From Vitrella brassicaformis CCMP3155 (taxonomy: Eukaryota; Protista; Chromerida), in assembly GCA_001179505.1 (NCBI GenBank), contig CDMY01000456.1, forward strand, positions 62,001-126,000: a DNA stretch of 64,000 nt, read 5' to 3'. This document shows, in pieces, positions 25,753 to 26,526 of the stretch; position 1 is the first letter of the stretch; each line of letters begins with the position of its first letter. The notes under the pieces were generated by a model. It was not told where the DNA came from and did no database searches. It saw only the letters and a program-made list of their open reading frames with translations. Made by a program: the position numbers and the translations under genes.

Positions 25753-26526
25753 TCAGCAGCTGCCGCAGCAACGATGTCCGCAACTGCCGCCGCCAATGCA
25801 CCCCACCTCATATTTCTGAAACAAACAAGTATCCCCACAACAGGCGGACATGGACGAATGGATTGTACGGATGGATGGGGCGTGCTCATCTGTCTGTCTG
25901 TCTGGCTGGCTGGAAGCCCCTCTCTTTTTCTTGACGTACCTGGTAGCCGCCCTCGCACCCGACGTATTCGTTCCAGTGGCCCAACAGGCAGCTGTCGCAC
26001 ATGTCGTAATCGTGGCACGTTTTTTTGCAGCCCTGAAGCTGACGGTGGTCGCCGCCAGCAGCAGAGGGCTCCTCTTCGTAGTCGGTGGTGGCAGTGTGGT
26101 TGTCGTGAAGGTAGTCGCCGTAGTAGTGTGGGCCTTGGTAGGGGGACAGCCGGCGGTAGTCACTGTTGGTGTCATTCTCCCTCTGAAGGTGGGCAGGCAG
26201 CTGCTGGAGCCGGCGGCGGCGCAATCCCTCAGAGCAGCCCGAAGCGCACTCACTCCTGCACGCGGCCGTGCACTCGTCCCCTTGGCCCAACTCAGAGCAG
26301 AAAGCCTCGCAGTAATTCTTGCAGATCTCTACGCACAGTGCCTCGCCGCCCTGCAGCTGCCTGTGGGCCTCTCTCTCCTGCACACCTGCAGCCAGAGGGA
26401 GGACAAACATACCATCGTTCGTGTGTGTGTGTGTGTGTGTGTACCTCTCATGGCGGGATTTGCTGCTGATGCGATGGCAAGGGCCATGAAGGCCATGAGG
26501 GCGACCACCGAAGTGCGAGGGGCCAT
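25753..26526 (-). CDS. Secreted 196-aa Cys-rich precursor with two disulfide modules and four RxL motifs
   Basis: Exons 26526-26445, 26385-25940 and 25815-25753 join in frame (591 nt). Signal peptide MAPRTSVVALMAFMALAIASA. Modules of 8 and 10 Cys, each preceded by HRQLQG. Confidence 0.8.

Follow-up and report, generated by a model that had tools for sequence, protein, structure and literature searches.

Putative RxL Processing of a Secreted Cysteine-Rich Precursor in the Free-Living Alga Vitrella brassicaformis

Introduction

The PEXEL/TEXEL pathway (Plasmodium export element and Toxoplasma export element) of malaria and Toxoplasma parasites is characterized by substrates that enter the endoplasmic reticulum (ER), carry an R-x-L motif shortly after the signal peptide as well as internal motifs, and meet a clade-D aspartyl protease, plasmepsin V or ASP5, encoded in the same genome. 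Cleavage by ASP5 occurs at either end of its substrate proteins (PMC4764566), and plasmepsin V also matures non-exported proteins (PMC10900883). The present study describes a gene of Vitrella brassicaformis CCMP3155, a free-living alga related to malaria parasites, which is located in a 64,000-nucleotide stretch of DNA (G000:C456:62001-126000, here called the window) and encodes a secreted cysteine-rich protein with four RxL sites.

RxL-guided processing of secreted precursors in free-living organisms is already known from diatoms, where RXL pro-domains follow the signal peptide and cut sites have been documented; the silaffin, silacidin, and cingulin precursors possess RXL at the ends of repeat units and are cut there, and silicanin-1 is listed among the diatom RXL biosilica proteins (PMC4557024, PMC5525289). 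Consequently, RxL processing in a free-living organism is less novel than an earlier note on this DNA had suggested, its principle being known. Another related system is represented by the plant alpha-hairpinins, which are produced from precursors with a signal peptide and multiple modules that are cut into peptides, each with four cysteines (C-X3-C..C-X3-C) and two disulfides (PMC7191063).

Judging from sequence, it is plausible that RxL sites serve for the processing of this precursor, a proposal strengthened by the present analysis. The locus is a real gene, which encodes a secretory pre-pro-protein and belongs to a small family of the Vitrella lineage with recombining copies; its processing at the RxL sites is given a probability of roughly 0.5. 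The new elements are the RxLQ motif before unrelated modules, an invariant leader as opposed to fast change between the cysteines, and a complete plasmepsin V/ASP5-type protease in the genome.

RxL Sites and Cysteine Modules of the Precursor

The gene lies on the minus strand (window positions 25753-26526) and consists of three exons separated by two GT-AG introns in phases 1 and 0. When joined by script, the exons gave a product of 196 residues identical to the public protein CEM14548.1 (UniProt A0A0G4FKM7; P0001), in agreement with the product length given in the earlier note. This public record was the query in whole-protein searches and folds, and the window sequence was used in exon-wise searches. 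The signal peptide, judged by eye, by hydropathy, and by the -3/-1 rule, shows a charge at R4, a core of hydrophobic residues from 7 to 19, and the tripeptide A-S-A ahead of residue 22, and entry into the secretory pathway, as in PEXEL/TEXEL substrates, is predicted from it.

The signal peptide (approximately residues 1-21) is followed by a pro-segment of approximately 17 residues ending with HRQL, the eight-cysteine module 1 (C-x3-C-x3-C-x3-C-x8-C-x3-C-x3-C-x3-C), RRRRL, a spacer of approximately 60 residues, the second HRQL, and the ten-cysteine module 2, which ends with CGHRCCGSC and is modelled as beta-rich. The RxL motifs start at residues 36 (HRQL-QG), 85 (RRRRL-QQ), 105 (YRRL-SP), and 142 (HRQL-QG), and the spacing of the 18 cysteines is 3,3,3,8,3,3,3 / 68 / 3,5,2,10,10,5,3,0,2. 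Recomputation of residue positions and spacing confirmed the first claims on all four RxL sites, both copies of HRQLQG, and both cysteine patterns; the signal peptide is likewise as claimed, and the protein is built like a secretory precursor composed of separate modules.

In 100,000 composition-preserving shuffles of the mature sequence RxL appeared 0.89 times on average versus 4 observed (P = 0.007) and RxLQ 0.056 times versus 3 observed (P about 1e-5), values that are post hoc and hence indicative only, as the motif was picked after being seen. The two HRQLQG copies are encoded by different codons for Arg (AGG and CGT) and Leu (CTG and CTT), which argues that their identity is retained at the protein level. 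The genome-wide scan for HRQLQG gave 19 matches versus 3 in the control; the 14 matches outside the family have no cysteine module downstream and look like chance, which indicates that the exact hexapeptide is specific to the family.

Conservation of the RxLQ Motif

The family was found only in the Vitrella lineage, with about five loci in the genome and one metagenome relative. The word-index search among 5.8 billion proteins retrieved only P0001 and P0002, and an exhaustive HMMER search, which covered 1.84 billion representatives, retrieved only P0002, P0003, and a spurious unrelated repeat protein (P0004). P0002 originates from the ENA metagenome contig L012 (ERZ893784), where the gene DNA is 82% identical to the window gene, and P0003 is the annotated 71-residue product of a truncated copy on contig C382, a model which stops at a putative donor. 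The remaining copies used in the comparison are the paralogue L002, located on the same contig as the window gene, and a more distant copy on contig C1006 (Tables 1 and 2).

Table 1. RxL motifs flanking the cysteine modules in the family copies.
Copy	Before module 1	After module 1	Before module 2
Window gene	HRQLQGG	RRRRLQQ	HRQLQGC
L012	HRQLQGG	RRRRLQQ	DRCQLGSC (lost)
L002	HRQLQGE	RGRRLQQ	YRELQEC
C382 copies	HRQLQGG	region absent	region absent
C1006	ARRLQVD	RRHRLEE	LRELQSC

RxLQ precedes module 1 in all five copies and module 2 in three of four. Moreover, in L002 the counterpart of CCGSC is followed by an acidic stretch, the sequence ALRQLQEGC, and a third, different four-cysteine module, which is thus also preceded by RxLQ. 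The three modules differ in cysteine pattern, and the predicted folds of module 1 and module 2 are helical and beta, respectively. Since R-x-L-Q stands before modules with such unlike patterns and folds, a structural role of the motif is unlikely, and a role in processing or sorting is argued for. In the window gene a distance of 13-17 residues separates the first motif from the predicted signal-peptide cut, and the further internal motifs come after it.

The same kind of motif was found in an unrelated Vitrella family, where a pattern scan identified DDxP[LV]RRL directly before six-cysteine cores (CCSxC..C.ANC..GC); the gene on contig C770 contains three such cores, with RRL-QCCSSCSSPSCWANCNPGC as a translated example. 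The use of this motif by an unrelated cysteine-rich family would, judging from the sequences, provide independent support for RxL processing.

These data also bear on a possible though doubtful reading, in which the product is a secreted one-piece, two-domain cysteine-rich protein of wall, matrix, or adhesion type and RxLQ acts as a cap, a docking element, or an uncleaved sorting signal. The repetition of one motif before three modules with differing cysteine patterns and predicted folds, the RRL directly before the cores of the second family, and the variable distance between motif and first cysteine (2 to 7 residues), which is ill suited to a fixed structural cap, all speak against it. It gains from the relative L012, which keeps module 2 without its motif and retains the spacer with both its N-x-T glycosylation sequons, from the hydrophobic C-terminal tail of L002, which resembles a membrane anchor or a glycosylphosphatidylinositol (GPI) anchor signal, and from the structural model described below, where HRQLQ falls within the first helix.

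Candidate Processing Protease

The genome encodes many pepsin-type genes, and the search for orthologues of ASP5 and plasmepsin V, which had been suggested in the earlier note, resulted in a complete plasmepsin V/ASP5-type aspartyl protease gene on contig C688. This gene shows a full-length match to the nepenthesin-type N-terminal model, and its closest solved relative is plasmepsin V (E = 4e-39), while the next family follows at 3e-7. The encoded protein possesses an N-terminal anchor, the DTG and DSG motifs, a cysteine-rich nepenthesin-type insert, and a C-terminal membrane helix, and its flap sequence is YTEGS versus YCEGS in P. vivax plasmepsin V. By alignment, three S1 residues (Ile, Tyr, and Phe) are retained together with the S3 Gln and the flap Glu, and at the fourth S1 position there is Ile, the residue of ASP5, where plasmepsin V has Val; the mapped pocket residues are those named for the two parasite enzymes (PMC4764566; bioRxiv 10.1101/2023.02.16.528815), and the mapping, which is inferred from the alignment, reproduces the published equivalence of ASP5 Ile554 and Val in plasmepsin V. 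Like the parasite systems, the alga is therefore predicted to combine RxL-bearing secretory proteins with a clade-D aspartyl protease in one genome. No paper on chromerid plasmepsin V substrates was found in our literature search.

Another type of enzyme was also considered. Processing at basic sites is known from Kex2-processed fungal repeat proteins and animal prohormones, and apicomplexans and their relatives possess subtilisins; a subtilisin-type protease could cut after RRRR between module 1 and the spacer, Leu and Gln being incidental. Such processing is improbable. A basic site does follow module 1 in 4 of 4 copies having this region (RRRR twice, RGRR, and RRHR), but the motifs adjoining the modules, HRQL and [Y/L]REL, each contain only one Arg and lack any dibasic pair, and it is Leu and Gln that are the conserved positions. 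Also, no kexin/furin proprotein-convertase P-domain (PF01483) was detected in the six-frame genome search, which is weak evidence, as short exons could hide it.

Pattern of Change between Copies

In comparison with L012 all 13 aligned cysteines are kept, while about half of the intervening residues differ, at 14% nucleotide divergence. The ratio of nonsynonymous to synonymous substitution rates (dN/dS) is 3.4 for module 1 (15.8 nonsynonymous and 1.2 synonymous), 1.9 for module 2, 0.9 for the spacer, and 0.44 for the pro-segment; the excess in the modules is based on few changes, is not statistically decisive, and is confounded by gene conversion between paralogues, and for these reasons positive selection is not claimed. 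In comparison with the C382 copies, the 300 upstream nucleotides are 98-99% identical, as is exon 1, and the pro-segment has 0 nonsynonymous changes, while the next 20 codons contain approximately 13 nonsynonymous and approximately 2 synonymous ones; exon 3 matches are 85-86% identical at C382 and C261. This mosaic pattern points to gene conversion between the copies.

The near-invariant leader together with hypervariable residues in a fixed cysteine framework is reminiscent of toxins and defence peptides. An invariant leader, a hypervariable mature part, fixed cysteines, and many copies, some of them broken, are the features of cone-snail toxin and defensin-type superfamilies, from which the Vitrella family differs by the lack of homology, by two or three differing modules per precursor, and by its origin from a unicellular alga.

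Several paralogues look damaged, and it could be supposed that the window gene is itself a decaying or mis-modelled member of a fast-turnover family, in which motif conservation results from recent duplication or gene conversion of the 5' half. In the C1006 copy a 4-nucleotide insertion creates TAA immediately downstream of the signal peptide, so that this copy is probably a pseudogene of recent origin; L002 shows a frame change and a 10-nucleotide deletion; the C382 copies are truncated, with the 5' parts 98-99% identical between loci; and transcript look-ups were empty, both for the exact product and, among metagenome contigs, for the exon 1/2 junction. Nevertheless, the supposition is quite unlikely, as in the window copy the reading frames are intact, the splice sites canonical, and the 18 cysteines complete, as the aligned cysteines are all kept at the above divergence while the residues between them change, as neither the second nor the third RxLQ falls within the homogenised 5' part and their codons differ, and as the distant C1006 copy retains RRLQ and RELQ at the same positions.

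Predicted Structure and Domain Assignment

AlphaFold prediction from the single sequence, with a mean predicted local distance difference test (pLDDT) score of 55 for the product, gave two antiparallel helices over module 1 (residues 30-60 and 64-88; pLDDT about 70-80), disorder at residues 85-150, and three beta strands in module 2 (residues 164-195; pLDDT about 76-80). According to this model it is plausible that module 1 folds into a helical hairpin whose CX3C motifs form a mirrored ladder, from which four nested disulfides may be inferred.

The likeness of module 1 to alpha-hairpinins, proposed in the earlier note, would concern the predicted arrangement of CX3C motifs on an antiparallel pair of helices linked by a loop. 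Module 1 does not itself belong to the alpha-hairpinins: in contrast to the plant peptides, it has eight cysteines in a doubled ladder instead of four, shows no sequence similarity to them, and comes from an alveolate.

Known folds and families gave little further assignment. Foldseek found nothing in PDB at E up to 0.001 (laterosporulin at E 1.5 was disregarded), the VIA wide fold search gave only generic helical hairpins with Z up to 6.2, and ESM Atlas contained no feature match and only generic structural neighbours, one of which, for module 1, carries PF02363 (C_tripleX; TM-score 0.64). In PDB sequences nothing was found below E = 0.7. Neither ShKT (PF01549) nor PF02363 was matched in Pfam at E up to 10 by exon 2, exon 3, or the whole protein, and the only Pfam match was the sub-threshold TIL at 0.02-0.03.

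Four other assignments were considered. The protein resembles ShKT domains in being small, cysteine-rich, and secreted, and strings such as C-KKT-C recall the ShKT end; however, the UniProt ShKT label of A0A0G4FKM7 is unsupported, because the Pfam match is lacking, the cysteine spacing of module 2 is unlike the six-cysteine ShKT pattern, and the modelled beta strands of module 2 contradict the helical ShK fold. The nematode C_tripleX family (PF02363) shares the CX3CX3C spacing. Metal binding by the CX3C ladder, as in copper-storage-like proteins, was judged less likely for a protein of the secretory pathway, and a bipartite plastid-targeting signal was rejected on inspection, since the short stretch after the signal peptide is directly followed by the cysteine-rich module.

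Comparison with PEXEL, TEXEL, and Diatom Precursors

Predicted ER entry, R-x-L shortly after the signal peptide, internal motifs, and a protease in the same genome are shared with PEXEL/TEXEL systems. At the level of single sites the PEXEL/TEXEL likeness claimed in the earlier note is partial. RRRRL-QQ, with RRL in 3 of 4 copies, and the non-conserved YRRL-SP fit the TEXEL consensus RRLxx (PMC4764566). The window gene fails the PEXEL consensus RxLxE/Q/D (RQLQG twice, RRLQQ, and RRLSP), only RRLQQ having Q at P2', while the paralogue motifs RELQE and RQLQE fit RxLxE. The conserved Gln at P1' of the Vitrella family is in neither consensus. Further differences are that the organism is a free-living alga without a host cell and that the cargo consists of small disulfide-rich modules and not of effectors.

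The layout is also of the diatom type, as the pro-segment (residues 22-38) ends with RQL and motifs stand at module starts. The resemblance concerns the layout only: the diatom units are rich in Lys and Ser, unstructured, and silica-forming, the Vitrella modules are cysteine-rich folds, and no sequence relation exists between them. To our knowledge, Vitrella has no silica wall.

A number of observations weigh against RxL processing. The HRQL-QG sites fit neither strict PEXEL nor TEXEL, as they have Gly instead of E/Q/D at P2' and Gln at P2, where ASP5 strongly prefers Arg (PMC4764566). The four RxL sites were originally regarded as boundaries and an identical HRQLQG was placed before each module; RxLQ is indeed conserved before the modules in all copies but one, and both HRQLQG copies are present in the window gene, but in the closest relative L012 the second is lost (DRCQLGS), YRRLSP reads YLPLSP in L012 and is absent in the remaining copies, and the site after module 1 is HRL and not RxL in the C1006 copy. 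In the structural model, computed from a single sequence with the low mean pLDDT given above, HRQLQ lies inside the first helix and may be part of a folded element. Relative to L012 less change has accumulated in the spacer than in the modules (dN 0.09 versus 0.24-0.30). In many prohormones the reverse is found, the spacer not being the better-conserved part. The uncertainty of the dN/dS excess belongs here as well. Finally, the exact-product look-up gave no transcript, and one exact search of metagenome contigs for the exon 1/2 junction gave no match; the "MetaClust" source of P0001 is a UniParc identifier and thus no independent transcript.

The spacer contains the two N-x-T sequons and three of the four DY pairs of the protein, including DYEEE. 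From the sequence, the spacer could conceivably undergo tyrosine sulfation or glycosylation, and it could itself be a product.

Gene Features and Related Loci

The coordinates are collected in Table 2. The window surroundings of the gene are formed by unrelated genes, and no cluster was found there.

Table 2. Features of the window gene (window positions) and related loci in the Vitrella genome.
Feature	Position	Strand	Residues	Description
Exon 1	26445..26526	-	M1-R27 and first base of G28	signal peptide (~residues 1-21), pro-segment start
Intron 1	26386..26444	-		GT..AG, phase 1; contains (AC)n microsatellite
Exon 2	25940..26385	-	28-176	pro-segment, module 1, spacer, first part of module 2
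First HRQLQG	26348..26365	-	35-40	end of conserved pro-segment; candidate cut after L38
Module 1	26234..26335	-	45-78	eight Cys, mirrored CX3C ladder, predicted helical hairpin
RRRRL-QQ	26201..26221	-	83-89	basic site after module 1, TEXEL-like RRL type
Spacer	26048..26233	-	79-140	acidic, Tyr-rich, predicted disordered
YRRL-SP	26141..26158	-		inside spacer; not conserved
Second HRQLQG	26030..26047	-	141-146	directly before first Cys of module 2
Module 2, first part	25940..26029	-	147-176	five Cys
Intron 2	25816..25939	-		GTACGT..TTTCAG, phase 0
Exon 3	25753..25815	-	177-196	module 2, second part, five Cys, CGHRCCGSC end, TGA stop
Paralogue L002	G000:C456, about 309 kb			same contig, 220 kb from window gene
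C382 copies	L004 (G000:C382:37755-40862)			two tandem truncated copies, assembly gap between
C1006 copy	L037:783-1615 (G000:C1006)	-		more distant copy
C261	C261			stray 3' exon of the family
RRL six-Cys family	G000:C770:82817-83089; C297:119514 and 125810; also C322, C938, C508			unrelated family
Plasmepsin V/ASP5-type protease	L048:1297-2448 and 73-693 (G000:C688)	-		complete gene
Second nepenthesin-like candidate	G000:C231:123748-124182			
CAP homologue	G000:C356:57480-57740			81% identity

Intron 1 with its (AC)n is the same in L012, L002, and L004, and the position of intron 2 is the same in L002 and L037. The (AC)n microsatellite of intron 1 (26386-26444) and the (GACA)n-like run of intron 2 (25880-25925) are retained in all family copies, and short matches to these runs elsewhere in the genome are repeats only.

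The C1006 copy keeps the 3,3,3,8,3,3,3 ladder, with an extra intron inside it. In the C382 copies the first half of module 1 is joined to PHRELQ, followed by GTAAGT; here the module 1 remnant is succeeded by a second HRELQG directly before a stop or a possible splice donor, and one downstream exon at this locus encodes WCIGGGSCGHRCCGSC in shifted phase. The L002 counterpart of module 1 has C-x2-C with Pro-Pro in the second arm. Modules 1 and 2 of L002 are in different frames, the 10-nucleotide deletion lies before the exon 2 donor, and at L002:1353-2475 there is a 15-nucleotide repeat, (CAGCGACTCCGGCGG)n, which reads SDSGG or QRLRR depending on the frame; this paralogue may be damaged, mis-assembled in the repeat, or differently spliced.

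In L012 the homology to the window gene ends inside intron 2, and family exons 1-2 are followed (L012:3913-4152 and downstream) by CAP/SCP-like exons (..LPQLAWSQ / ALSQIAAKHSRDM..) and not by the CCGSC exon. The CAP homologue in the Vitrella genome is on another contig, and the L012 arrangement represents a gene fusion in this relative or, alternatively, a chimeric assembly.

Proposed Processing and Its Significance

In the proposed RxL processing the protein would enter the ER, where its cysteines would form disulfides, and an endoprotease would cleave the conserved R-x-L(-Q) motifs behind their Leu, so that the pro-segment is removed, the modules are separated, and an N-terminal Gln is left. 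The most likely enzyme, as suggested by its sequence, is the Vitrella plasmepsin V/ASP5 orthologue on contig C688, and the process would match, by analogy, the way in which diatoms process their cell-wall precursors at RXL. Once released, the modules probably act extracellularly, and the conserved cysteine framework with fast-changing loops fits defence, competition, or recognition better than housekeeping.

More tentatively, the orthologue could be a general pro-peptide convertase for several unrelated cysteine-rich families, and the parasite export motif could have arisen from an ancestral secretory maturation signal, which may in turn be related to the RXL processing of diatoms.

If the motifs are uncut, the family would be just another orphan group of secreted, cysteine-rich proteins that evolve fast. 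Should the predicted hairpin prove real, the mirrored CX3C ladder with eight cysteines would represent an unusual disulfide scaffold. The window gene, its paralogues, and the RRL six-cysteine family provide concrete candidate substrates, which bear on the origin of the PEXEL/TEXEL pathway of malaria and Toxoplasma parasites, as a free-living relative with both the protease and natural-looking RxL substrates would be a host-free system for the role of this pathway before parasitism.

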